From Trichoplax adhaerens (lineage: Eukaryota > Animalia > Placozoa), in contig NW_002060944.1 in NCBI RefSeq assembly GCF_000150275.1, positions 6,547,102 to 6,611,101 of the forward strand: a DNA stretch of 64,000 bases, in the 5' to 3' direction. The notes under the pieces are model-generated. The model made no database searches, had not been told where the DNA came from, and worked only from the letters and a program-made list of their open reading frames with translations. The position numbers were made by a program, and so were the translations under genes. Numbering within the stretch: the stretch's first letter is position 1; every line of letters starts with the position of its first letter. Positions 30,999-54,135 of the stretch are shown piece after piece.

Positions 30999-31197
30999 TA
31001 TGGAAATATAAAGTCATTAGCACGTATCTATTCGCAGAAAAAATTGAAATCTAGCTTTTAAAATTTAAAATTTAAATATTTATTATCATCATACTGAGAC
31101 ACAATTATATAATAATGCATCTAACATGACTTATTAAAAAAGTTTATAATTATTTTTATACGAATTTATAATAAATGAATGATTTTATCGAGAATTT

Positions 31198-31210
31198 TTT
31201 ATTTAATAAA
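31198..31210. terminator. Adjacent opposite-strand poly(A) signals (TTTATT-T-AATAAA) between convergent PGS1 and dynein
   Basis: AATAAA on + at 31205-31210 and on - at 31198-31203. Context is very AT-rich, so chance occurrence is plausible. Confidence 0.3.
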
Positions 31211-31702
31211 CTAAGTAGCAATATTTGCCTATATGATATCGAGAATTTTATGTGGTATTCAAAGATGCGTGTAATGCAACGGATACCGATGCATTGCATT
31301 GCAAGTTTCGAATTCGTCAAGTTACATGAGTGATAATTTGATATCAAATCTTCCAAATAAATGTTCGTTTACCGAACTGTCATAAAATATATGCAAGCAG
31401 AAAAAGACTCAAACAACCTTAATAGCCTAGACAAAAGCATAGTAGTCTAGCTAATTATCCACTAGATTGTATTGTTGTATAAATATAATTGTATCATTGA
31501 TATACTTGTAGATTAATTAGTATATTACAGTTAGGGGAACTCAGTACAGTAGATACGAGTTGGCTATTAGGAAAATGACAAGAACGAAAAGTTGTTGTTC
31601 GAATGACTTACATGATGATTATATGCAAACATGTAATAAATCATACGCGTACATAGTATTAAATGTAGTTCGAACCAACTTCATGAGTCATGCAATTATA
31701 TT

Positions 31703-34700
31703 TTAAGTGCTCAACAGTAAAGCAACTCCTGCTAATATCCATTTCGATGAATTTTCTTTCGTCTTAAGATTAAATGTCCAGACAAATGTTGGGCCACGTT
31801 GTCGAGTTTTATATACTGGACACTCATAGATATTTCTTGTTTCTTGACGATCAACAGTAATAGCACGCAAAAATATTACTGGCATTGATGGAGTTAATTC
31901 CTTTAGTTTAGAATCTTGTATAACACCAGATTGTACATCCCAGCGGGCACCTTCCATGAATAAACCATGAATATAGGCACCTTCACGAGGCGGACTATTG
32001 AAATCTTCTTTGCTTTTCTTTGTAACATCACACTGAATACACATTTTATCAAGTGGCCATTCATTTTTCCTAGCCATAGATTGCATAATAGCGGTTAAAA
32101 ATGATTGAGGATTGAAAAAACCAGCCAACCAGACAACATTTGGTAATGCAAAATCAGTTGTCCAATTTTCCAATTCTTTAATACGCAATAACAAATTACT
32201 ATACCAAGCAGCTAATCCTGACAGTGATGGATATGCACGCTTAGTCCAGCTATCAGGTACTTTATCCAGGAAGAGTGAATTTTGTAAATTCTCCATATCA
32301 GCTGATATTGTTAATTCACCCTTTAAGCCAAGATCTAATTCTTTTAATGATCGTCGTATTTCTGATGTTAATATATTCATTCTTTCACATTCTTGGAAGG
32401 CTACAACAGTATATGGTGAACGATCTTCTATACGTGCCATCATTTCAGATACATTAAATTCTTCAGGTAACTTCTCGATAATTTCATCTAATGTTTGCTT
32501 GACTTTCTCTTCGCGTGTAGACGCTGCACCGCCACCAGCACCAGCATCGCGTGGTTGCATTTCCAAGACAGTTCGGAAAAGACTATTTGATGTTGTTGTT
32601 AAGAAACCAATTTCAGCATTTGGATGGAGACCATATAGATATGGGCTTTCAGGTGGTAACATTTCAGAAATGTACAAATGATAGCCTTTATAATCGCTAT
32701 TTGGTGGTACAGGGAAACCTGGTGCAAACTGTAATTCACCATCTAATAAGTCGGCTCTCATAAACTCTTCAAGATAGGTCTTACATAGACGTCGATCCCA
32801 ATCGTCAGTAATATGGCCACCATACATAATTTCACCGAATAAATAGCGCAAATCAGTCCATGGAACTTTAGTATTTGCTTCTAAGTAATTATACAAGACG
32901 TTGACACTGATAGTTAAGTCACCAGTATTGAATGGATATGGCCGATTCCATCCTTGTGGTCCAAATTTACGTCGTTCAGCTACAACAGCATGGAAATAAC
33001 AGAGTGCAAATAAGATTGATTTAAATTCACTCTCACGTGTACATATTTCCAGGGTATCTTGATTAAAGTTGTCCAATGCTTTGTATAAGTTGGCTTGCAT
33101 TCCAGTCGGTGGTTCATTGGTAATTTTAATCGATGCTTGCAATAGACCTTGTGGTATAATATGAGATTCTGGTGTTGGAGCAGGCTCAGCTGACATAAAG
33201 ACACGATAATTTTCATGACTTCCTTCACTATAAGTTTCAATTTTCTTCTCTAATGTTGGCAACCATTTAGCTACTAAATGGATATTTTGCAAAATAACCC
33301 AATGACCTTCACGTGCAGCTAAATCAAGACTTTGTTCAGCGACAATTTCTTGACCTTGTCCAAGTGATATATTATGCAAGGAGCCAGCACTAATAGTATA
33401 GCCTAATTTTTTACCTAATGCTTCGACATCTTTTAATGGATCAACACCAGGTGATAAGATGAAAAAGATTGGTGTTGCTGGGCTACTTTCTTCAAATGAT
33501 CTAGAGAATTCAATTTGTCTATTTTCAACATATTTATGGCCTAATTTTTCTTCCACAAAATTGCTAATAGCATAAGTCATACGATCCGGTCGCAATGCAC
33601 GTAACATGCACAACTTTTGTAATGATGATTTTGTTTTCCATTCTTGTGGGAATTTCTCCTTTTCAGGGCATTCACTTTCAACAAATTTTTTCCATCGTTT
33701 TGCAGAACCTTCGATATCACGATCTAAATTTCTAAATTCATCCATGGATGCCAATGCTTTAATACCACCCCAAGCATGATGAGATAGAAAATCGACTGGG
33801 CTGATAATATTTTGCACCACTGGGAAACGTAATAGGAAATCTAATTCATTAGCCCATATTTCTTTATTCATGAGTAATACTTGGAAGGTAACTTGAGCTG
33901 CAAAGATCAACTTATCACTTTCGAATAATCCACGACTTGTATAAGCATACACCGAGTAAGTAATAATATCGATTAAATTAGCTACTCTAACTTTAACATC
34001 GTCCGCGACTTCAGCACGATCAATGGCCTTATTAAAGACAGCATTGAATGCTTTTAATGAGAATTGATAGATAGGATTGATCTTATGTAGATCGTTGAGG
34101 ATGAAATAGAGTAATGATGCACGTGCAGCTGCTGGACGATAATGTTCACGAGCTTGATTGATTTCAATTTCAGTTGCTTTGGATTCTGTCACTTTGACTT
34201 CAATTTCTGATGCAGTTCGTTTAGTTACTTCTAAGTTCTCCACTAATGAATAATCACCTAAGAAATTGCCTTCAGCAGCTGATAAACGTGATAATAATGA
34301 ATCTTCTAATTCTTTCAAACGTATCTTGAAATCATTTTGTAATTTCGTTAAATCAGCTTTTGATTTTTCTAAATCAGGCCTTTCTTTACTGACAACTTCA
34401 GCTAGTAATTGATCTTCTAAGCCATCGCGTGTAACGGTGAAATTAATTAATGTTGCTTGTGCTTGTAATTCAGGCTTATAATGTGGATTGGCTAATTTAG
34501 TTTGTAAGATTAAGCGGAAATCTGGATGATATTCCACTTCTTTATCACCAATCTTGATAAATTTACCTTTCTTGATGGTATTTCGACCGAGTAATGGATC
34601 AAGAACAGGATCGATAATTTCATCCAGATTTTCAATCAAGACGATATCACCATTGGAGACAGCACGTTCAATAATATCTAAATAATTACGTTGTCCAAGG

Positions 34701-37700
34701 CGTACAACACGCAATTCTTCACCATAACGATTTTTAATCCATTTAATACCTTGTAATTGTGGATCAATCATTAATGGCCAGCGTTCAGCATTGGCTAAGA
34801 TGGTTGCATTCTCAGTTGACATACGATCACTTGGTAAGCCTTCATTATTCCAACCAGCAACAGTGGCATCATCGGTTAATAATGTTAGCGGATCTAAGTC
34901 TTCCGTAATTGGTATGGGCACTTTTTGCTGTTGTAGAAATGGTATCCATTTATGGCCAGTTAAATCAGCACGATAATTGCGTGTAAAGCAACCAACATAA
35001 GATATAAATGCAGCGGTTAAGAGGACATCGCCAGGCAAAGTTATTTCTTGATGTTTTAAATTAACAACCGATTCATTCCAACGTATTTTCTCCGATGATA
35101 AACCTCCAACTAAGCGATTGGCTAGTGTAATAGTTTTAGCTGTTGTATCTGCTTCTTGTTGACATTTTAATTTTTCAGAAGTAGCTTTCTCAAATTCAGC
35201 TGTTAAACGTGATAAATTATCATCTAAGATGTTAATTTTAACCTTGATATTGGCTAATTTCTCTTGTGCAGCTGCTAATTCAGCATTAGCTTGCTCTAAT
35301 GCAATACGTTTTGGCTCGACTTCACAATAAACGTTATAAAATACGACGGTATTTTTAACCCATGAGCATAAGCCACCAGCAGCTAACGATTTATTGCGTA
35401 TAAAATCAGGATTAAATTCGGGATTATTTAAGTAGGGTTGTAATGCTTTCAAGTTGGAATCATCGATATGTTCTTTATCGAAATTAATTAATGTCTCTAA
35501 GAATGTATCCACACGACTCATCATTAATTTAGCTTGTCGCCAACTTCGATCTTTTGGTATTTTATTGGGTGTTGCTAATAAGACCATAACAGCAGCAGTG
35601 ACATTTTTAACTGCTTCAGGTGGCTGACCAAATGATTTCAATTCGGTTAAATTGGCTTTATTTAATGTATTTAATGCTTCTTTTGCAGCGACTAAAGCAG
35701 GCTCTGCTTTAAGAAGATCTTCTTCACATGATTTTTGCTTTTCGGCAACTTCTTGTGCAATTAAAGCAACTTTCTTTTCTTCTTCATCAGCAATTTCTTT
35801 CTCTTTACTGACTTTTTCAGTTTCAATACCGACTTTTTGGATTAATTTATCAGCATCTTCATTTTTCTGCTTTAATTCAACTTCTTGTGATGCTAATTTG
35901 GCTTTTAAATCATCGACTTGTGATGAAGTGCTTTCTAATTTTAATAAACCATTTTCCAGACGTTCCATTTTACTGGTTAATTCTTTACTTTTTTTCTTGA
36001 GTAAATTGCGATATAGCTTAATTTGTTCCAAGAAACTTTTTGGTGTAGTATAATTATAGCGGCGTTCATTCGTCAAGTAAACTTTACTCATTTCGTTAAC
36101 ACTTGTATGGACATAGGCCATAAATTGACTAATGGAATCTTTGATATCAGTATCTAAGATGTCCACTTCATCTAAGAAGCGCTTGCTAACACGGATTAAT
36201 GCTTCTTCTGGCCATTCATGGAACCAATCGATGGAGGTACAATTGACAACAGCGGGGAATTTTCTAGCTCGGACACGTAATGTTGAACCCACTGGTGAAA
36301 AGCATAAGACTACTTTCAGATTTTGCCTTACACGATCAATAAAGAATTTCCAACAATTTTCTTTGGTATCTTGCATACCACTACCGCGTACTTCAGCGCG
36401 TAAACTACCAATAATGTTATCCACTTCATCATCAGGATAAAGCTCAGGAATTTCACCCGAGGCTAAAAGATCGTTAATTAAGACTAAAAATTGCTCATCT
36501 GGTATTTGTGCATCAGTCAAGAGGAAGACTGTACCAATATTTTTCAAGCCTGCTTTAGTACATAGACTAGCTAAATCTAACTTGAGATCAGCAATAGCAT
36601 AACCTTTTCGTAATGTAATTTGGAAGACATCTAAACTACTTATAAAGGATGCTAATCTTGCTAAACTTTGCTTACCACTACCACCAACACCAACTAAGAG
36701 TGCATTACCGCGTGGCGATTCGAGGATACGATTAATACGACAGACATGTTGCATAGCATCTTCAAATAAGACAAGATTCATAACAGCATTCATTTCGTTA
36801 TAACTATCTAATGCTTCTTCTAATATCTTATTGATAGAATGCCAATCTTGGATAGGCATATACTTGAGATCGCCAATACCACCTGAGAAATGGCTATAGA
36901 GTAATGGTCGAACTGCTAAGGGTTCTTCATCGATATCATCGAAATTTTTCCTCACCATATCCGCAACTAATCGATCGAAATATTCTAAATCTTTATCATC
37001 GACTAATTTATCACTATAGACACGATAACTTTCATGCATCCATATGCGTACTAGATCCGTTTGGACACGGATACAGTCTGGTGTTGAAAATAAGATACCT
37101 TGGAAGATATTGGATAAGTCGCGTAAATTGAAGGTATAATGAAATTTTATAGCTGTTGGTAAGAAATGGCTTGTCACTTTATGATGGAGTGAAATAGCAG
37201 CATTGACCAGATTTTGTGAAATTTTATAGATACTCGATGGGAAGGTAAAAGAATCAAGATGAGCTTGCATGATACTATTATAGATGGTATGCAATGCATC
37301 GGAGCCAGGGAAACTTAATGCAAAGACACAGAAATGGCGTTGTAAGCGTGGATTAACAGTAAAGCTACCAGCAGTTGGATTCATACAAGCAATATATTGG
37401 CAATTATGGATATCTTTCAGCAATAACTTATTGCGATCATACCAATGTTTATAATCTAAATGTTGTCGTATTAAAGTATGCGGTGAAACAGTGCCATAAG
37501 TATCAACTTCGGGCATATTTAAATCATCCACATAGTAGACCATTTTTTTCGTGCCAGGTGGGCCATAATTACGTCCAGCTTTCTTTTCTAATGGTTTCTC
37601 CAAGATACCTTGTAACATGGCTGAGGTAGTATAATGATTAAAGGGGATAAATGTCAATTGGTAATCATCACCAAGACTTTGTAGGACATTATTGACCAAG

Positions 37701-40700
37701 ACAGATTTCCCTGTGCCAGCATTACCTACGAGTAAAACTGGACGACCACGTTGCATTAATAATCGAGTAAAATGGCGAACACGAATCGTTTCAGCAGTAT
37801 GGACTAAAGCCGATTGCAATGGCAATTCAGGATCAAATTCAAATTTAGGTACTTTTTCAGCCCATGGTACAAATTTTTTCGTTTCACGATCGACTTGATA
37901 ATCAAATACCGTGGCAGCCGATGGAAATTTAATGGTTTTAAATTCACTTACCCACCATTTACTAAATTCAACACGATAATCGACCAATTGATCTTGGAAC
38001 ATAGCACCACCAAATGCCCACACAGCAGCAAATACAAAATAGATTTCATAATGTTCTTTGGGACTATCTGGAGGGACATTATCTTCCGTTAATAAAACTT
38101 CTAACAGATAGCATAGTGTTTGCACCATACTAATATCGGCCACAGGGGTAATCTTCTTGAAACGATTTCTTAATGTATCCAAACAAGTTGGAACATATTT
38201 ATCAAATAAGATGATTAAATTCGCTTTTTCCGATTGAACTTCACGTGTATCAATCCAACTTGTAACATAAGGACTCCATCCTAAATCTGTTGGATTAACA
38301 TATAAGATTCCAGCACGTGAAACGGTGGCTGGTGTTGCATATTTCAAGTGTCCAATTTCAAATAATAATCGCATAGAAGGTGTTAACGGGATTCTTTCAT
38401 TACTAGCTAATGTTAATACTTTATTATCGTCCATAACTGTATTTAACGATTCGATCCACATTGGATCAATATCACCATCTAAGACAATCCATTTGGGTCC
38501 GTCACCGGATAGATTGGCTAAATCACGCATAGAAACTGAAAATAAGCCATCTTTCCATTCCCGTGTTGCTGAATTAATACAGCCGAATAATTCATCGGTA
38601 GTGACTGCTTTCGGATTCATATCATGCCAGACTGGTTTACGCTTTTGATTTTGATAGGTTTTATGCAAAGTGCGTAAAATTTGTGTTTTTCCTGTGCCAG
38701 CAGCACCAATAACAAAAACAGAATGGCGTACAGCTAATAATTCATCTAATTGGACTACTTTCAAGATGAAACTATCTTCAGGTTGTAAATTAAGTTGTTG
38801 TGTTGATGTCTTGACGATAGCTTCTAATTCAAGATCGCGCTTACGTGGGACATCCAGAGATGGGAAGAGATCGCTAATTAAGCCAAGGAAAACCGGTAAA
38901 TCATCGGTGACAATTTTAGGTGTGTTAAAATCACGTAAAGCACGCATTAAAACTTGATCTTCAGGTCGTTGGCGATCACTACGTTTTAATGATCCAGCCA
39001 CTACTAAGACCGATTTAATAGCACGTAAACCCCAATCGTAATGATCTTGCTTAGATAATAATTCACGACATAGGGTATATAAAGTAATAAATTTACGTGC
39101 TAATAATCGTGCATCTAAGAAACCTTCTGCTACCAACATAATTTCACAAATTAATTCAAAATCAGGTACTACCATAGCACATGGACGGAATAATGCTTTC
39201 AAATTTTCTGGTAATTCAGTACGACCAGCATAGCCTGGATTCATGGTGATAAAGATGCCCACAGTAGGTGTTAAGGAGATTTCTTCACCTTGGAATACAA
39301 AGCGTTCTTTTCTATCACGGATAGCATCTTGGATCGATTTCACTTGGACTGCTACTACCGATAATACTTCAATAGAGATACGATTAAATTCATCGAAGCA
39401 ACCCCATGCACCTGTTTGCGCTAAACCTTTATAAATATTGCCTATGGATTTATAATCCATTTGCTCCGAGCAATTAAAGACATAAACCATACAACCTAAT
39501 GCACGACCAAGATCTTTGGTAGTTTCTGTTTTACCAGTACCTGCTGGCCCAGCTGGAGCGCCACTCATAGTTAAATGCAAAGATTGCGTTAATGTAATAT
39601 AGCAACGATCTGTTAATGGCGTAATGACTAGACGTGGTTGATTGCCAAGGTATTCATAGGAATAACAAAATTGGGCATCGCAAATATTAGCGAAACAATC
39701 TTTCTTATCATCATCCCAACGATGTCTTAATTGGCATAACCAAACGAAAGCTTGAGCATTTTCTACTTTTTGCTGGATTAATTTCCCGACTACATCACGA
39801 GCATGGACATCAATGGTACAAATAGTCATAATTTTTTGTCGCTCTCCTTTGGATAAATCACCTAATAACATGGTAATGAGTGAATTTAATTGAGCAATTT
39901 GTTTCTTATTATAATCTTTTAAAGCATTTTCGTAGCCTTCTTCCAAACGACTAAAGGCAATATTGACTTCTGTTGTCCACCATACTTGTGTACCAGTTAA
40001 GGCAACTTGAGCTGGATAATCAAAGATCCATTGATCACGAGCTTTCTCTTCATATGTGACAACAGCTTCAGTTAATTGATGTTTAATTGTGGAGCGCATA
40101 GTATCCAATAATCGATTTAACCATGTTTCAACTTGGCCAGTACATGAGCATGAGGTATTAAAATCGACATATTCACCATCTTTACTAAACATACCGATAG
40201 CAACTTTAGTTAATTCACCATTTTCATCTTCTTCAAATTTCAGCCTTGCAATACTGTCGAATAATTTGGATAAATGGCGTGCCACTTCCGATGGACGATT
40301 ACCATTAGAGAGAATATCCAACAAATCAGCCGATGAGACAAAGTAAAAACGTGGAAACGCTAATCGTTTCGTTTCTAAATATTCTGCTAATGCTTTCTCA
40401 CATAAGGATAATCTGCCTTGGATATCTTCTAATAGGTTGAAGAGACCAGGTTTATTGGTTGCTTCAACAACATTAGGTGTTTTTTGTGCATCAGCCATTA
40501 AATCTTTAAAATCAGCATCAATTCCATCAAAACGTTTAGAATCTTCAGGTAATTGCTTACGAATATCTTCTGTCCCAATAAAAATACTCTCTAAATGCGA
40601 CCAAGTACGTTGGACTTCAAACCAAATGGATATAACACCATCGGCTGTTGATAATTTCTTTTGCCATGATGAAACCTCTTCTAAAAAGTGTGAGATATGC

Positions 40701-43700
40701 TTGGAAGTAATTAAATTTTGCAATTGGACTTGATTATCTTCTAATGTCTCAATTAATTCTTCACTCGAACGTAATAAGGGTGTTTGTGTACGTGCATGTT
40801 GTTCATATTCAAATTCCATAGTTGACCATGTTACATCCAATTCTTTGAGGATCTTTTCCATGCTTAATTCTTTAATAGCTTTATCCACAATATTGCGAAC
40901 TTCATCTTCATATTTATGCAAATTTAAGGCTAACAAATCAGCTAATGTAGTACTATTATCCATGACAAATTTAACTTGTGTTGCAGCCATAAGTTGTTGC
41001 CAATGGCGTTCACGTATTGCTGAATTTTGCAATTCACTAACTGCACGTAAAGAGGTCATCATATTTTTCACTGTTGAACTTAAACCATTATAAGCATCCC
41101 ATGAACGAATTTCACGATCTAATTCACGTATTTCTTTAGCAAATTTCTTACAATCTGCATCCATACTTTCAACATTAATCTCCGACCAATACGTGGTTTT
41201 CCAATCATCAATATCACTCATAACCATACTAATCATATCCCATAGCGTCTTTAATAAGCGAATTTCACGTCGGCATGCTTTCAATTGCTTATAATCTGGT
41301 ACATTAACTTCAAATAAGCTTGCTGATTGAGCTAATTGATTCATTTCTTCTTCTAGTGTATGGGTTTCTAGATGAGCGGAATCTAAACGATCATAAGGAT
41401 CTTCACAATCGAAACGGAATGGAGCATAAGCTCTGAACCATTCACGGAATTCATGTTGTTTAACTTCAAATTGGCCACATTTGCGGCGTATAATGGCTAC
41501 TTCAGCTGCCTGTAATGGTGCAACACTTTGTTTAACAGTAACTGAAATCTTTTTAGTATTATTCCACTTTTCCGGTAATTCACGGAGTTGATTATGGACT
41601 TCTTCCGACATTTCTTGCTCATAAGTTTTCAATAAATCAATGGTTGCTTTCAAGGGCTCAAATAATTCATCTGTTGCTGATGTACGATCACGTACAGCTA
41701 ATAAATGGCCCATAACAGCGACAAGACCATCATAATCACCTTCTTCAATTTGAAGGGTTAATCCAGTATCGGTTGATTTAATGAAGTTCTCTAATTCAGC
41801 TAAACTGTTGGTAACATGATCAATTAAATGTTGCTTGAACATATAACTCCAACGTTTCACCGTATTTAATAAAGATTGCTTAAATGGGCGAATATCGACA
41901 CGGAACCAAGTATCAAAAATGGATGTACCGTCGACATCATCGACTTCGTTATAAATACGCTCATAGGTATCAATTTGTTCTTTAAATTGTTCTAATGTCG
42001 GTGGACATTCTGGTACACCATCTTCAGCGTGTTGTTCAATTTCTTCCGGAGTTAAGACATGATTATATAATAGGAATTGTCGCATAAATTCATGGCGATC
42101 ATCCACCCATAAGTAGGAATAAGTATCAAATGAATTGCGATACTCGCAAGCTTTATTCATGATATTTTGAATTCGATCCATTAATTCTTGTCGCATTTCT
42201 GATAATTCCAACATATCTTCTAGATCGCTTTGGTAGTGATCCATACCATTATGCTTAGCTAAGCGTGATACAAGAGATGCTTGTCGATAAACATCACTAA
42301 GTAAACTTTCAACAAGATCGTAGAAACTGTTATGTGCACCAATATCCAATGGTGGTGTAAAAATCATATCAGGAGCACTAAGATCTAATCGAGCTTCTAG
42401 TAATGGAGCTGTATTGATTTTAGGATCAGTATTGTCTAGCATATAGGATAGTGAGCAATGGATAGCATTAAAGAATCCATCTACAATCATGTCATCTAAG
42501 TAGTCGACATAAGCTCGCCAAATATCTGAATCTTCATTGGCTTCGAATAATTCATAATTTTCCTGAAATCAATATAAAAATGAAAGAAATGAATTTATTA
42601 TTGCTGGACCACCAGTTCTATTAATCCCTAAGATATATTGGATTCAGTTTTTTCATGGTAGAGCAGTAATTTCAAATAGAAATTATAATATTCGAACTGG
42701 ATAGTCTAAATGCTATTAAAGGATAGCAATGGAATAAGCTTCTAGCGTAAATTGACCGTCATGAACTAGGAATAAAGATATATATATATAGTATGTATTA
42801 CAATTTCTTCGATCGAATAATACCTTAAGAAGGTTATGCAATCGTTCTCCGGATTGCTTGATGAGATTATAGCGATTATTAAGTTGCATTTCACGATCCT
42901 AGACGTTGTAGGTAATAAAAAATATGACATATTAATTGTTTTATTTGATACATGCCCTCATATGTATGATCCAATATCAAGTAATTAATGCGCGTTTTTA
43001 TCTAATGGAATATTACCTCGACATTTAATAAGGCGTCTTTCTTGTCATCTTTCCTTTCATATAAAGGCGATACGGCCCATTTAGCCATATCTTTAGACAT
43101 AGCTTCCACGTTATCTTTAGCTTTCTGCACTCTTTTCTCTAAATCGTGAACTTTCTCCCGTGTTGATTTAATATACTCCCAAATACCTAAAAAAATACCG
43201 AGAATTGATTATCGCTGATGTCATTATTTACTGTTAATTAATTAATTAAAGCTTAAAATTTATTCATATATTATACTCGTATATAAATTAAGCAACCAAA
43301 ACAAAACTGAATTGAACTATCGACTAATAACAAAGAATATTAACAAATATCAGTAATTGCTCATGTAGATCATAAAACTACATCTAACTCTGGTAGAGAT
43401 CTGCTACCATCATACTAGCATGAAGTTTGTAAAGTTCTGTTTTGTACCTTCGCTATTCCAGTTTAATTCGGTTTCAGCCTTTAATAACTGCTCATCAATT
43501 TCTTTCAATCGATCTTCAATTAGTGGGAATTCAACTTCAAGTACAGTTTCTCGTACTTTATTGTACCACATAACGATTAAATCTAAACTGCCCAAGTACT
43601 GACGGAAAGTTTCATTTTTAGAGTAGATTTCTGCAGCACTGCCTGGTATTGTTTCTTTATCTCTCATCTCCAGGTATTTAACTTCACGTAGGACAGCTAC

Positions 43701-46700
43701 CAACTAATTAATTGGTAATTAAATAAATATATTAATTATACTGATTTCTCGCTTATTGCTTAGCTTAGATTATTTCCTGATCGAAAAGCCTAATTGGATA
43801 ACATCAAATGTTGACATTTTGATACCTGAGGGTCAAAATTGACAGCAATAAGATTTGTTGCTTCGTTGCGAACGATTAGAGAACGTTCAAGGTTATATTT
43901 GGCTTCATCGCCGACAACTTCTGACCAAGCTTCAAATTTTTTACCCTCATACCTAGTCCACATAAATCATAGTTTTAGGTATTAAGTTATAGCAGTAGTT
44001 TATATGTAAATATATGATTTTAGAGTTAGCTGGAAACTGTTAATAGTGCAATATTGAAGCCTGCTTAGTATAGAAGTTTAATAATACTTTCATAAAGTTT
44101 TATATGTTGCACGAGATTGAAATGGCCAGTTCTAACTTACTTTTGAAGTAGTTCGATCATTTCTTCGTATTTCCTGAATATTTCTTGTGCTTCTGGAGTA
44201 TCTTGAATATTTCTAAAAGGGATGGCAGTAATTTGAGCAATGATGATACAGAGGCAATAGAGATGTAGCGTAAAACATGCCTGTAAGTTACATAGGCGCC
44301 TAGTAAAACGCAATAAAGATATGCAATTCTTGCATAACTTACTGATGATCTAGTTGTTTTAAACTTGCCATAGGTACTGAAATACGGTGACGAATTTCAC
44401 GAGCCCATTGCAAATTTCCGGCTACATTTGGCATATTTTTATTTATCGGTGCTGAACCCTCTTTATTTTTCTCAGATGCAATTTGTATATCATATATTTT
44501 TTTAGCGTTATCCAGCTCCTTATTGAAAAGGGTTAGAAGAATGGCGTATTTATGCTCGAAATCAGTTTTAATAACTGGCCGATTGAGCAGAGAACCAAAG
44601 CAATTGATCAGCTACAATATGGGTAAAAAGGATATCAATTAGGAATATAGGTAAGCTACGTTAGCTCTATTATCGCAGTAGATTTAAGTTATTTTACAAG
44701 GCCAATCCTTCTGGTCTACAGTTATTTAACATTCTATAATGATCTTAGGCTATTGTGAAATAGAGTATACCTTAAAAATAGCTTCAACACCAGAGCAATC
44801 TTCAAAACCTTGGCACACGATAGAACCAAGTCGTCGATCTAAATCGTAGACTTTTCTCTTGAATGACTCGTAATCGTTAACAAAATCCTGCCATTGATAG
44901 TAGCATTAAAATAATAATTTTTAGTATAATGGCCAGATATAATCGGCTGATAACGAATTTGGAATCAGTCTACGTTTGACTTTAGCTGTTAATTTTTACA
45001 AACCTCATTATTGATATCTAATGTATCATATGTGGTATTGGTAAAAACTTGCATGTATTCAGAAAATTCATTGAATATTTGTACTACTTGTTGACTTAGA
45101 GTTTTTCCTTTAATTCCGCCAAGTTCAACTTTTTCGAGCTTATAAAAGTCTAAAGCTGTTTCCATAATTTCCTATTGTCAGTTCATAGTAAAAGTTCATT
45201 AAATTTTGATGCAATATACTCAATTTACTCATATTATAACGGGATTATCACATTAGAAATTTACAAGTTTCTCTCCCTAAAATTATAGCGTAATAAAATT
45301 ACCTGGACATGTTGTAGTCGTTCAACAAATTTTTGGTATCGAGTAAAAATCAGAGTAGGTGAGAATTCCCATTCCCGAACGTTGGTTCCAACTCCTTTAA
45401 AAAATTTGGAGATATTTGCTTTGGTTTCATCGAAGTGCTGCCTATAATAGCGGCAGATATTGATCGTTTTCGTCACGCGGCCGATAGTTTCTTCAATTTC
45501 TCCCTTAAATAGCTCAGAAGCATCCAAGAAATTGCGAGCCTAGAATAAATTTACAAGAGAAAATTATATTAGAATGATAAGCGAAGATCGGTATGATTGA
45601 TAGTATCGAAAACCTATTATAATGATAAAGTTATTTATTATTTACCAGTTCGATAATCATGTTGGATAATTCTTGTAACAATACAATAATTCTTGCAGGT
45701 GTACTGTAATATTTTGAATTGGCCCAAATTAATCCAATAGTATGGAAAAGTGGTGGAATTGATTTCTTAATAGCATCAAATTCTGTTTGTTCCAGGTCTT
45801 CTAGTAATGGCTTTAGGGGCTTTAAATGAATAGAAATATCTCTTGCCTCATTTAAACCTATTTTATGTATAAATTAATTTCATTTCAGTTTAAGTAAGTA
45901 AATTAAAGAATTTTCATCAATAGAATTACCTGTTACGACATCTTGAAATGTTTTCTTAAATGAAGGGAAATAGCTACTTTGTGTTTTCTCGAGCAATTCA
46001 GCCATTTTACGAACTTTTGGATCTCGTAGCTATCGTAGAAATTAAAATATTTCAAATTCATATCTATTTGTGTCAGGTGTACGAAATGTTTCATATAGAT
46101 TCACATTAATGACAATACCTGCTCGTAGATACATTCTAAATTTGCACATTTTGCTTTCCAAAAGACAATTTCAGTAAATGGTAAAGGATTTAAACCTTCC
46201 AACAGCGGTTGTGCAGAATCTCTTTTCAAGACATCTCGAATTTGATGCGACCATTCAATAACTGCTGATTCAATGGCATGGACTAGGCCACGGCTCCATG
46301 TTTCCTCTCTATTTATCCATAAAAATAAATTTGTATTTTTTGCTATTACCATTGGTTTTTAAATTGGTAATAATTTCAAGTTTACCACAACAATATTGAA
46401 TCAGTGTTCATAATCATAAATAAATTAATAGTAATTAAATTTAGAAATTGTTGAAATTCATTAAATGAGTTTTACTTGTCATCTGATTCTTCAATCATGC
46501 GTTCAGATCCAACTGGAAGTGGTAAAAGCGTTTTACCTTTAACTTGACCAGCAATAACATAGACATTACTCTTTAATGAATGGACATGCCTAAGTACATC
46601 TTGGGAGACAACACTTGGCCATTGTTCATGATTTTTAGAATTGGTCAAGATGGGCACAAGAACCTGTTATTATAAAGTACATATATGATGCTGTTAAGGG

Positions 46701-47592
46701 TCATTACATCGAATAGTTTATGTTCTTTTAATTGTTAAATACGGATGGATGTAGTTTTGAAAGCTAACACCGTAATATCTATAGAAAATTTAAAGTTACC
46801 ATAGAGCCTAATAATTAATATTTGAAATAATCAACCATTTAATGATTATCTATTGATTAATGAGTTATTATAACTATTTTAATAAAAGATAAATAATTTC
46901 GCTATTACAAACAGTAAAAATTTGTCTAATTTTCTAAATATTGAAATAATTATTTTCTAATTTTAAGGTTATGCGGCATTGCCACTTTGCATCGTAATAT
47001 TGACGTATTATTTGCGATAATAATTTAACAAAGTTGGAAACGAAATGATTTTAATCTATACTGTACAGGTATAACACTATTCTATATCCGTTAATTTTTG
47101 CGTAAGCTTATGTCAAAATTAATTAATCATATAATATAGAACTAATTTTCTCTATACGAATAAAAAAATATCGTGAAGTTTACATTGTGGTGTTCAAAAT
47201 GATCGACTAAAATTTAAATGTCTACTTGAACAATATACCTCATCGACAAGCGCTGACAATTGTTCCAAAGGCGAATTTGATAGATCACCATAGTTTAAAG
47301 CAGCCTTGAAATTTTCTTTTGGTATAGGCTCGCGAGCTTTTTTGATGAAATAAACCGCTTTTTGCTTCAAGGTACTAGGAAACTCCAAAGAGACACACAG
47401 TGCTCCAGCTGAATTGCTATAAAAAACTAAAATCATCTGATCGGATTTGTCCAAAACTTGCTGTATTATATTCTTATTTTCATCGATAGTATACATTTTC
47501 TGCCATTTTTCGTATTTAACTTTGAGAGTACGTAGGACGTACTCGGATATCCATTCCAAGCGAACATCGACGTTATCGTTGTCGTTCGACAT
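31703..47592 (-). CDS. DNAH9: Axonemal outer-arm dynein beta-type heavy chain (DNAH9/DNAH11/DNAH17 co-ortholog), ~4464 aa, 15 exons: 47239-47592, 46476-46663, 46119-46308, 45930-46029, 45646-45857, 45303-45539, 45004-45171, 44771-44887, 44343-44611, 44141-44212, 43826-43952, 43448-43703, 43017-43186, 42824-42898, 31703-42562
   Basis: P-loops [24 protein letters not shown] and GVGGSGKQ; WGCFDEFNR; HYDWGLR; stalk; C-terminus [36 protein letters not shown] typical of beta-type outer-arm chains. The 14 upstream exons sum to 2535 nt (845 codons) with consistent phase. The symbol denotes the class; a single vertebrate paralogue cannot be assigned. Confidence 0.96.
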
Positions 47593-48089: not shown

Positions 48090-48790
48090 TAATAAATATT
48101 CAATGCTAGGACTGGTAGAAATTGTAAGCTTTCCAAGGATGTTGGGAAGAGTCTGTCAATAACAACGTTTGGGTAGTACCGTTATAGTAGGGTCCTAGTG
48201 CAGAAATTATGTTTGAGCTCTATATTTTCTCTTCGTTATATTATGCAGGATACATTTGTATGTAATTAATAGATAATATTCAATGCTAGGACTAGTAGAA
48301 ATTGTAAGCTTTCTAAGAATGTTACGAAGAGTCAATCGATAGCAAGGATCAGGTAGTACTCGTCAGTAGAGTCCTAGCACAGGAATTATACTGGAGCTGT
48401 ACATTTTCTCTTCGTTAGATTATGCAGTGTGAATTGGTATACAATAAATAGATGATATTAAACACTAAGATTAGTAGAAATTACTAGCTATCGAAGGATG
48501 TTGGGAAGAATCAACTGATAGCATGGTTTGGGTAGAACTTTTACAGTAGAGTCCATGTGCAGAAATTATGCTGGGCTCTACATCCACTAGTAGTTCGTTA
48601 GATTGTGCGGCCTGCATTGGCATACAATAAATAAATAACATTAAATGCTTGTACTAGTAGATATTACAAGCTTTCGAAGAATGTTGAGAGGAGTGGAGTT
48701 AGATAGTAATTGCACAGTAAAGTCCTAATGTAGAAGTTGTTCTGAAGATCTACATTTTCTTTTCGGTATATTCTATAGCCTGAATTGGCT
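48090..48790. repeat. Tandem array, 4 copies of a ~180 bp unit
   Basis: AATATTCAATGCTAGGACT.GTAGAAATTGTAAGCTT at ~48095 and ~48275, with diverged copies at ~48454 and ~48637; each has GTCCTAG...GAAATTAT...ATTTTCTCTTCGTTA-like blocks. Confidence 0.9.
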
Positions 48791-49788: not shown

Positions 49789-50798
49789 ATGGATGGTCGA
49801 TTTATCAAATCTCTACACGAAAAGGATAGACAAAGTTATCAATCCGCCAAATTTAATGATGCGATGTCTTATTGTACCCAAGTATTGGATAAAATTAAAA
49901 CGATAGTAGAAAAGACTATTGATCTCGAAAATTATTAGTTTTGATCATAATCATCTTTGTGTATTCTAGTCAAAGTAAACGTGAGAAGGCAATTTTTATG
50001 TATAAAAAATCACTTAAGATTCAATTGATAATTCTTGGCTACAATATGTTGCTACATCATATTATATATAATATTGGTTTGATTTATTGTGATCAGAGTA
50101 ATTATATAGAGGCTCTTTGTATGTTTGAGAAGTCACTCCAAATTCGATTATCCATTTTTGATCACAATTATCCTAATATAGCCGCATTATATCATAAAAT
50201 TGGCTTAATCTATTATCATCAGGGTAATCATAAAGAGGCTCTTTCCATGGTTAACAAGTCACTCCAAATTCAATTACCGATTTTTGATCATAATCATGTA
50301 GATGTTGCTAAATCATATCATAGCATTGATTTAATCTATTATCATCAGGGTAATCATAAAGAGGCTCTTTCTATGTTTGAGAAGTCACTCCAAATTAGAT
50401 TATCAATTCTTGATCATAATCATCCTGATGTTGCTAAATCATATCATAGCATTGGTTTGATCTATTATCATCAGGGTAATCATAAGGGAGCTCTTTCTAT
50501 GTTTAACAAGTCACTCAAAATTTGGTTACTTCTTTTTGGTTGTAATCATCGTCATGTTACTATATTATATCGTAACATGGGAGATGTGTATAAGAGTCAA
50601 AATAAGCTCAAGGAAGCTATTTGTATGTATAATAAGTCACAGAAAATGAAATCATTGGTCCTTGACGACAATTATTTCTATAACATAAAGTCGTATAATA
50701 AGATAGGAAAGGCATGAAATGATGAAGGTAAACATCAAATAGTTCATTCGACTTGTGAGAAGGCATATTTAAACTGCAGAAAAGGATTCTACAAATAA
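49789..50798 (+). pseudogene. Intronless 42-aa TPR-repeat gene (kinesin light chain/NPHP3-like), probably disrupted
   Basis: 126-bp repeats encoding IGLIYYHQGNHKEALSMFEKSLQIRLSILDHNHPDVAKSYHS. The ATG at 49789 (MDGRFIKSLHEK..) stops at ~49938. Out-of-frame repeat remnants FDHNH (~49940) and VATSY (~50048). TGA at 50715-50717 interrupts IGKA*NDEGKH, where the repeat has Y. Confidence 0.75.
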
Positions 50799-52136: not shown

Positions 52137-54135
52137 TTATGATTTTCGCGATTTTCCACTACAATTTTTTAAATTCTGAGCAGCAATTTCTTTACTGCAC
52201 CTTGGCTCTAATCGTGTATCTTTATAGCATGTATCAGCTGCAGCTAGACTAGGATCTGTCTTTGGATGGCGTGTCAGTAACTGCCAGCAAACAACATGAT
52301 GACGAACATTCCAATCTTTATGTTGGCAACTTACGCTGCAATATCGAGCAATCTTGCAACCACCGCATGTTTCACTAGCTTTTTTTCCACAATGCCAGCA
52401 TCCAGATTGATTTTTAACTTGAGAAAATGCTGAACTTCGATCTTGATCATCCTGAAATTGTATAAAGAATAAAAGCTCTGATGAGAAATTTAGCATGACA
52501 ATAAATTCTGGTTTTAAAACGTTGGTATAGTCTTTGCTGTAAGTTGCTATGTCGAAATTTTATTTGTATACTAATTTAAGAGTTTAATGTATAACAAGAT
52601 TTGAAAATTAATATATTGCAATTCATTTAGCTAACACAATACCCAATATGTCGGCACTAACCTTATTATTACCATTTTTCTCGCTATTCCGAGAATTTAA
52701 ATGTGATCGCTCTAACTCTTCTTTTTGCTGCACTTCTTCCTCATATTTGTCAGAATCTTGCTTGTTTTTCGCTTTACCTTCTATCTGATCATTTTTATTC
52801 GATTGTTGATTTAATTTTGTTAGAAGTCCTTCGGCTTTCCTCACAACACCTTTCATCGATTGTAAGAAATCTCCTAATTCGCTGACTTCAGCTCCTATAA
52901 TTATTGTAATGTTGCAAAGATTTTAACAATCTAACTTGAGTTACGCTTGTAATGTATTATCGTAGCGTTGAACTTATACCTTTAACATTTTTATTCGCAG
53001 CAGCAGCTAATATTTGTATTTCTTGTTTATCGCTATTAGTTCGGTTAATCGATTTTTGTGGCTCATAAAGGATGGCTGCTGATGCTGGATTAATTTTGCT
53101 ATTCTCATGAAAATAGGGCGCCATAGGAGTAATTTTCTCCAAAACTTGATCAAGCATTAAATTATTTTCTGAATCATTTTTCCCTTTTTTCCGATAATTC
53201 TCACTATCCAATCTTTCCGCTAGAGATTCATTATATTCTGCAACAGATATAAAACCTTTGAAATTAAAGTTATAGCAAGACAGATGTGTAGCATAAGTAC
53301 GGATAGCTATCAAGGACGATAAAAGCATAACTTAATCCTGACCTTTTCGTTTAAGATCTACACGAGCTGGAGTAGGAATATTTTGACCATACATCATTAA
53401 CTTACAGTCAGCGTGTCCGCTTGGCCAATTTCTATTATAGAAATCTAAAGGGGACGATGGGTGACGGTGATGATAGTAAGGAGTAGTTGGAGGAGTTGGA
53501 TAAATCGAATTTAGCGAAGGTAGTGAAGGTCGGATGCTTAATTGAGCACATTCTGATAATTCTTGACGAAGTAATGGTATAGTAGATCGAAGGAATTGTG
53601 CAACAAATTGACGGATTGGAAAATTGGTGATATCCTGTAATTTATGCTGAAATTCGTCTACACTAAGAGCAGCATTAACTAAATCGAGAATAATACCACG
53701 TACTTTTTCGCCAACTTCAGGTGAAATATCCGATCCAAATTGCCGTAAAGTGGTTAGAAATCGTTTGAGCTTACTTAACTGTTTTGCGGAATATATGGCA
53801 ATATTTTTGACCACATTATCGTGGCTATTAGTAGGAGAATTATTACAATTACCAACGCTAAGACCATGATGATTATTGTTTAAGATGGTTTCTTGTTGAT
53901 GAGGCTGAGATCCGATTGCATTAGTCGATGATGGCAGTGAAGTTAGCGATGTCGGCGGTAACGTTGAAAGTTGATGGGCTGGTGTTATAGTATTACGTAA
54001 AGAATTTGTTAATTGTAATGGGCCTAGGTTGTTAGTTGGTTGTGTTGGTGCAAGTAATGGTGGATTACTAGGAGTGAATATCGGTACCGGTAGATAACTT
54101 AATGACGATTTAAATGCGGATGGTAATGCTGCCAT
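52137..54135 (-). CDS. CBFA2T: MTG/ETO/nervy-family co-repressor (RUNX1T1/CBFA2T2/CBFA2T3 co-ortholog); exons 53343-54135, 52980-53255, 52662-52894, 52137-52451 (~538 aa; further 5' exons possible)
   Basis: TAFH/NHR1: [81 protein letters not shown] finger: [42 protein letters not shown] junctions in phase; an acceptor (TTAACCAG) lies just 5' of the ATG. Confidence 0.92.

Follow-up and report, generated by a model that had tools for sequence, protein, structure and literature searches.

Messenger RNA (mRNA)-mediated intron loss, the reverse-transcriptase model reportedly associated with the names of Fink (1987) and Mourier and Jeffares (2003), removes adjacent introns exactly and in concert, leaves behind an outsized exon, and spares introns at the 5' end of the gene. 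A passage of PMC2614967, citing Niu et al. (2005) and Roy and Gilbert (2005), gives the concerted loss of adjacent introns, with the extraordinarily large exons that it produces, as the signature of this process. Two related routes have been described. Recombination in Cryptococcus can remove internal introns, in tracts that need not reach the 3' end of the gene (PMC2395259), and the RNA-templated repair of double-strand breaks in human cells, which depends on DNA polymerase zeta (Pol zeta), yields consecutive precise deletions of whole introns from a gene's own spliced transcript, without retroelements (PMC12065846). A processed retrogene or retrocopy likewise carries an intron-free coding block that derives from spliced RNA. 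Here we compare with these systems a gene in a 64-kb stretch of the genome of the placozoan Trichoplax adhaerens (64,000 nucleotides (nt) of contig NW_002060944.1, positions 6,547,102-6,611,101, hereafter the window). Its minus strand encodes an outer-arm beta dynein heavy chain of 4,464 residues, of which the first 845 codons are divided among 14 exons and all the others lie in a single exon of 10,860 nt (31703-42562).

This gene shares with mRNA-mediated loss the exact disappearance of adjacent introns in concert, the outsized exon and the spared 5' introns. It differs in scale, with at least 47 introns and 10.9 kb involved in one gene; in setting, as the genome is otherwise noted for its retention of ancestral introns; in recurrence, over nearly the whole paralogous family and in other giant genes; and in that some of the intron-free blocks are internal rather than anchored at the 3' end. 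The Cryptococcus case fits three of the dynein paralogues described below (A, D and G) but concerns small fungal genes that lose one or a few introns, whereas the Trichoplax tracts run to 5-11 kb. RNA-templated break repair has in common the precise, consecutive deletions copied from the gene's own spliced transcript; it was observed, however, in cultured cells and tumours and affected a few introns near a break. Literature searches returned no description of intron loss, or of giant exons, in the dynein genes of placozoans.

The comparison rests on an ancestral intron map. We located the orthologous loci of three cnidarians (Nematostella, Pocillopora and Clytia) and three bilaterians (Saccoglossus, Branchiostoma and Haliotis), mapped each annotated orthologue protein exactly onto its own DNA with canonical splice sites, and projected the introns onto a seven-species protein alignment, counting an intron as shared when it occupied the same column in the same phase in at least one cnidarian and at least one bilaterian. 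The six orthologues carry 45-85 introns, distributed along the entire gene, and none of their exons is longer than 1,461 nt. Sixty intron positions are common to cnidarians and bilaterians in this alignment. Trichoplax retains all 13 of those that fall within the first 845 codons and none of the 47 that lie beyond (codons 956-4259); its remaining intron, at codon 820, is common to all three cnidarians. The difference between 5' and 3' retention is highly significant (Fisher's exact test on a five-species map, p = 2.5e-13). Each of the other six species retains 30-44 of the 47 positions, the longest missing run being five.

No alignment gap occurs within six columns of any of the 46 positions lost in the five-species map, and the protein length is unchanged, so that the excisions were exact. 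The last intron kept, intron 14 (42563-42823, minus strand, phase 0, codon 845), is also present in Nematostella, Pocillopora, Saccoglossus, Branchiostoma and Haliotis; as this intron too is ancestral, the erased block must begin, at its 5' end, no more than 333 nt into the giant exon. These sequence comparisons strongly support the view that at least 47 ancestral introns were lost precisely and as a contiguous series. A preliminary description of the window, made from its letters, had proposed wholesale erasure of 3' introns and had looked to an orthologue intron map to support it. The map bears this out, with the 14 5' introns at positions and phases shared with other phyla and the 47 3' positions precisely absent. 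The figure of about 60 expected introns in that description was extrapolated from the 5' density and gives way to the measured count of at least 47 missing ancestral positions.

Two features of the orthologues can be recorded beside the map. Haliotis, which has the 1,461-nt exon, and Nematostella both show runs of five consecutive missing ancestral introns, a baseline for the 47 in a row. In the Branchiostoma lanceolatum orthologue, several introns hold long arrays of 69-154-nt tandem repeats, each with splice-site-like GT...AG ends.

The identity of the encoded protein is consistent across several comparisons. In the giant exon, Pfam recognizes DHC_N2, AAA_6, AAA_5, AAA_7, AAA_8, the MT stalk, AAA_9, AAA_lid_11 and Dynein_C, and DHC_N1 is listed for the full-length public protein of Trichoplax sp. 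H2 (P0001, 'Dynein beta chain, ciliary [Trichoplax sp. H2]'), which completes the dynein heavy-chain architecture. The best relatives of solved structure are DNAH17 (6,109 bits) and DNAH9 (6,031 bits), while the other human classes score at most 2,461 bits. The top database relatives are named dynein beta chain, DNAH9 or DNAH17, with entries named 'dynein beta chain, ciliary' at 72-78% identity. The ATP site of AAA1 is intact, with GPAGTGKT at residue 1850 and DEFNR downstream. By these criteria the gene is assigned to the outer-arm beta dynein heavy chains, DNAH9/11/17 type.

The exon model was obtained by exact spliced mapping of P0001 onto the window; the protein encoded there differs from P0001 at three residues. 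Within the giant exon, the open frame at 31703-42490 on the minus strand encodes 3,595 residues counted from its first ATG; the frame stays open 5' of this ATG up to a canonical acceptor (tttcag|G), and the exon therefore begins at 42562 and comprises 10,860 nt, which with the stop counted make 3,619 codons plus the terminator. The longest other open reading frame in the window encodes 267 residues. The mapping confirmed to the base the arrangement originally noted, in which 845 codons in 14 exons of 72-354 nt are followed by one exon of 10.86 kb.

An exon of this size could arise if contaminating complementary DNA (cDNA) or mis-assembly had produced an intron-free stretch, and independent data speak to this directly. 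The Trichoplax sp. H2 assembly (locus L031, GCA_003344405.1) is colinear with window positions 28703-50592, at 99.46% identity over 21.9 kb, so that two independent assemblies concur over the gene and its flanks. We also compared public DNA and RNA runs over window positions 39000-44999. This interval is spanned by genomic contigs from another two studies, one of them 13,058 nt long, which cross the junction between the giant exon and the intron-bearing 5' part; the 5' introns are in place and there are no joints. RNA contigs of two studies (10,595 and 11,614 nt) skip exactly introns 8-14, which read CT..AC on the plus strand and hence GT..AG for the dynein gene, and are unspliced across 39000-42561 of the giant exon. 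The longer of them extends another 7.8 kb, a length that fits the unspliced exon plus a 3' untranslated region (UTR) of about 510 nt, to about 31.19 kb. The gene is transcribed and is spliced as modelled. As assemblies, DNA contigs and RNA contigs concur, assembly artefact and cDNA contamination are effectively excluded, and we attach almost no probability to them.

The 14 upstream exons, all on the minus strand between 47592 and 42824 and all placed by the P0001 mapping, total 2,535 nt. Exon 1 (47239..47592, 354 nt) opens with the ATG at 47592 and is matched by tblastn at 100% identity. It is followed by exons 2 (46476..46663, 188 nt), 3 (46119..46308, 190 nt), 4 (45930..46029, 100 nt), 5 (45646..45857, 212 nt), 6 (45303..45539, 237 nt) and 7 (45004..45171, 168 nt). 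Exon 8 (44771..44887, 117 nt) is joined to exon 9 in the RNA contigs, which also support exons 9 (44343..44611, 269 nt), 10 (44141..44212, 72 nt), 11 (43826..43952, 127 nt), 12 (43448..43703, 256 nt), 13 (43017..43186, 170 nt) and 14 (42824..42898, 75 nt). The introns measure 72-575 nt. Exon 15, the giant exon (31703..42562), holds codons 846-4464, which encode the end of the tail, the linker, AAA1-6, the stalk and the C-terminal domain. The 3' UTR is placed approximately at 31190..31702 on the same strand, with an AATAAA near 31.2 kb and an end estimated from the length of the RNA contig. On the other side of the gene, about 500 nt upstream of the ATG in what is presumed to be the promoter region, lies a tandem repeat (48095-48694; 179-nt unit, 3.3 copies, 76% match).

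A processed retrocopy, which would account for an intron-free block by retroposition of a spliced RNA, was considered and ruled out. The gene differs from such copies in its 14 kept introns, in the neighbour that it retains, and in the lack of a poly(A) remnant: the genomic DNA after the 3' UTR has no A-run that would mark a retroposed poly(A) tail. The neighbour, a phospholipase D (PLD)-type gene consistent with PGS1, is kept beside the dynein gene in Trichoplax sp. H2. The gene is thus an in-place orthologue at the ancestral locus, in agreement with the preliminary description, which had already argued against a retrocopy.

The neighbourhood offers some further observations. A PLDc_2 gene of about 500-553 residues adjoins the outer-arm beta dynein both in Trichoplax sp. 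H2 (L031:19594-21891) and in the mollusc Haliotis (L037:1-70; 553 residues). Its place is immediately beyond the 3' end of the dynein gene in Trichoplax and on the 5' side in Haliotis, in each case on the opposite strand, and the adjacency suggests an old microsynteny. The gene upstream of the dynein gene includes a TPR_12-rich exon on the plus strand (49941-50714), built of 126-nt (42-residue) tandem units with an 81% match. Beyond it, an open reading frame of 267 residues on the minus strand (53335-54135) contains a TAFH/NHR1 domain of the TAF4 or ETO type.

The uniqueness of the gene that the preliminary description implied is not supported. We searched the 105.6-Mb Trichoplax assembly with the dynein motor domain and read 20 kb around each match. 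Twelve of the 13 other dynein heavy-chain loci contain stop-free frames of 1,650-3,316 codons, that is, exons of 5-10 kb, and these fall into several arrangements. In paralogues B, C, F and J the giant exon is anchored at the 3' end, as in the window gene. Paralogues E and H have two giant exons parted by one intron, and paralogues K and L have several large exons with single surviving introns between them; all four look like intermediate stages. In paralogues A (of the DNAH2 type), D and G the giant exon is internal, with three to five small exons on its 3' side. The position at which a block starts on its 5' side varies among the dynein genes from 845 to about 2247 in outer-arm beta (ODA-beta) coordinates, and edges so unequal between genes indicate that the events were independent.

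The remaining locus, M (G000:C1402:~1,000,400-1,020,000), is the one dynein heavy-chain gene in the set whose motor has the usual dense intron structure, with at least 40 introns. The Walker B motif of its AAA1 is intact, and one 66-residue exon, from which the gene was classified, matches the single-headed inner-arm class (DNAH3/12/7) best. Of the 17 junctions that could be resolved in it, two fall exactly on introns of the outer-arm beta orthologues (codon 2183, phase 1, and codon 2666, phase 0), which would lend weak internal support to loss.

Outside the dynein family, the ryanodine receptor gene contains a stop-free frame of 3,675 codons that includes all four RyR domains (G000:C1414:12,009,133-12,015,270, minus strand) and exceeds the dynein exon, and in a midasin-like gene a single frame of 1,559 codons encodes three AAA_5 domains (G000:C1408:64,384-66,834, plus strand). 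Frames around PIKK, HECT, BEACH and other domains of long proteins mostly span 50-350 codons; a few are larger (PIKK, 1,115; HECT, 1,618 and 1,171; UBR4, 966; BEACH, 812 codons). Tektin, chosen as a ciliary control, and BIRC6 had no match in the Trichoplax genome at the search threshold and are uninformative as controls. It is thus the very longest Trichoplax genes that are marked by giant intron-free blocks, the window dynein among them.

We consider it probable that this outer-arm beta orthologue lost at least 47 introns precisely in the placozoan lineage, and that they were overwritten from a spliced transcript through several events or through internal tracts. Most likely, the genomic copy would have been replaced with the sequence of the dynein gene's own spliced transcript. 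This could have happened by homologous recombination or gene conversion with a reverse-transcribed, retroelement-made cDNA, or by use of the transcript as a template in double-strand-break repair. The few transposable elements of the Trichoplax genome appear inactive, according to a published survey (PMC2871265), and the RNA-templated repair route fits such a genome. The splicing of the resulting gene may present no difficulty, as the short introns (72-575 nt) imply splicing by intron definition, under which giant exons would be tolerable; intron definition lifts the limit on exon size that is discussed in part of PMC2614967. As to why the longest genes are affected, one event in such a gene might remove more introns, so that any cost per intron would make the gain greater; another possibility is that breaks are more frequent in long transcribed genes.

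The preliminary description had gone further and suggested recombination with a poly(A)-primed partial cDNA, possibly as a single sweep. In such a sweep one cDNA of at least 10.8 kb would have recombined once and erased everything from the 3' end as far as some point in codons 846-956. The window gene is in keeping with this, its block being strictly 3'-anchored and its 5' edge falling after the kept ancestral intron at codon 845 and before codon 956, where the first intron is missing. Paralogues B, C, F and J show the same 3' polarity. This is not so for A, D and G, whose giant exons are internal and followed by small 3' exons, and E, H, K and L, with their single surviving introns, resemble stages on the way to such a block. 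No poly(A) remnant was found, and after long divergence one event is indistinguishable from several. The erasure itself thus stands, while nothing specific supports its attribution to one poly(A)-primed sweep, and we think a single sweep unlikely. Since the paralogues show internal blocks and single surviving introns, the giant exon more probably grew by several conversion events, or by events with internal tracts.

Two other explanations dispense with a spliced template or with loss altogether. Introns may be deleted singly by independent genomic deletions, for example by microhomology-mediated end joining, with selection producing the contiguity, and one-intron losses of the microhomology-mediated kind are documented in nematodes and flies (PMC3698931). 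The dynein gene would, however, have required 47 consecutive exact deletions with no residue gained or lost, beside full retention of the 13 5' positions, where runs in other lineages do not exceed five; moreover, sequential precise junctions are taken as diagnostic of a spliced template (PMC12065846). We regard this explanation as very improbable. Also very improbable is the proposal that the intron-poor 3' four-fifths of the gene is primitive and that the 47 introns were gained on the cnidarian-bilaterian stem after the placozoan lineage had split off. Such gain is formally possible if Placozoa are sister to Cnidaria plus Bilateria, and fails outright if they are sister to Cnidaria. Even on the first topology, it would have filled only the 3' 81% of the gene, at the density of the 5' part (one per 77 codons versus one per 65), and added none to the 5' fifth, where all 13 shared positions are already older than the placozoan split. 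A dozen paralogues and the ryanodine receptor gene would each have to show an equal coincidence, and the intron-rich motor of locus M matches orthologue introns exactly at two positions.

Several points weigh against loss by spliced-template conversion as we have described it. Should Placozoa lie outside Cnidaria plus Bilateria, the direction of change is set by parsimony and by the retention of 13 of 13 positions in the 5' fifth; protein database searches with the giant exon, with its first 900 residues and with the tail of P0001 returned no usable sequence from a sponge, a ctenophore, a choanoflagellate or a second placozoan genus. The RNA template is deduced solely from the pattern of loss, direct RNA coverage of the giant exon amounts to 3.56 kb, and the apparent inactivity of the few transposable elements also counts among these points. 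The paralogues, the ryanodine receptor gene and the midasin-like gene were assessed by their open frames and not by ancestral intron maps, and the internal blocks of paralogues A, D and G are not predicted by a strictly 3'-primed model.

An Ephydatia fragment (P0202) was considered as an outgroup and rejected, being a chimeric, tail-only model.

Trichoplax is a textbook example of an animal genome that preserves ancestral introns, and for this reason the contrast between 47 positions lost and 13 kept is especially sharp. The dynein gene, the model of which was already public, is a clean example of a known process, spliced-template intron loss, and its 47 consecutive precise losses beside 13 of 13 retentions are among the sharper natural illustrations of it. 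As giant blocks recur among about a dozen paralogues, and in giant genes of other families, in 3'-anchored, internal and intermediate forms, this becomes a comparative system rather than an anecdote. With several placozoan genera now sequenced, that system could tell one sweep from accretion, retroelement cDNA from RNA-templated repair, and gene length from expression as the factor that sets the rate of loss. It is also a warning for gene prediction, and for the phylogenetic use of intron presence and absence, in placozoans. More tentatively, and with rather more doubt than confidence, the longest placozoan genes as a class (nearly all dynein heavy chains, the ryanodine receptor and midasin) might each have lost most of their internal introns independently, in a genome that otherwise conserves introns. 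If so, a process linked to gene length would be indicated, such as transcript-templated repair in long, heavily transcribed genes of an animal in which body cells found the next generation by fission, or, alternatively, selection that is stronger the more introns a single event removes.

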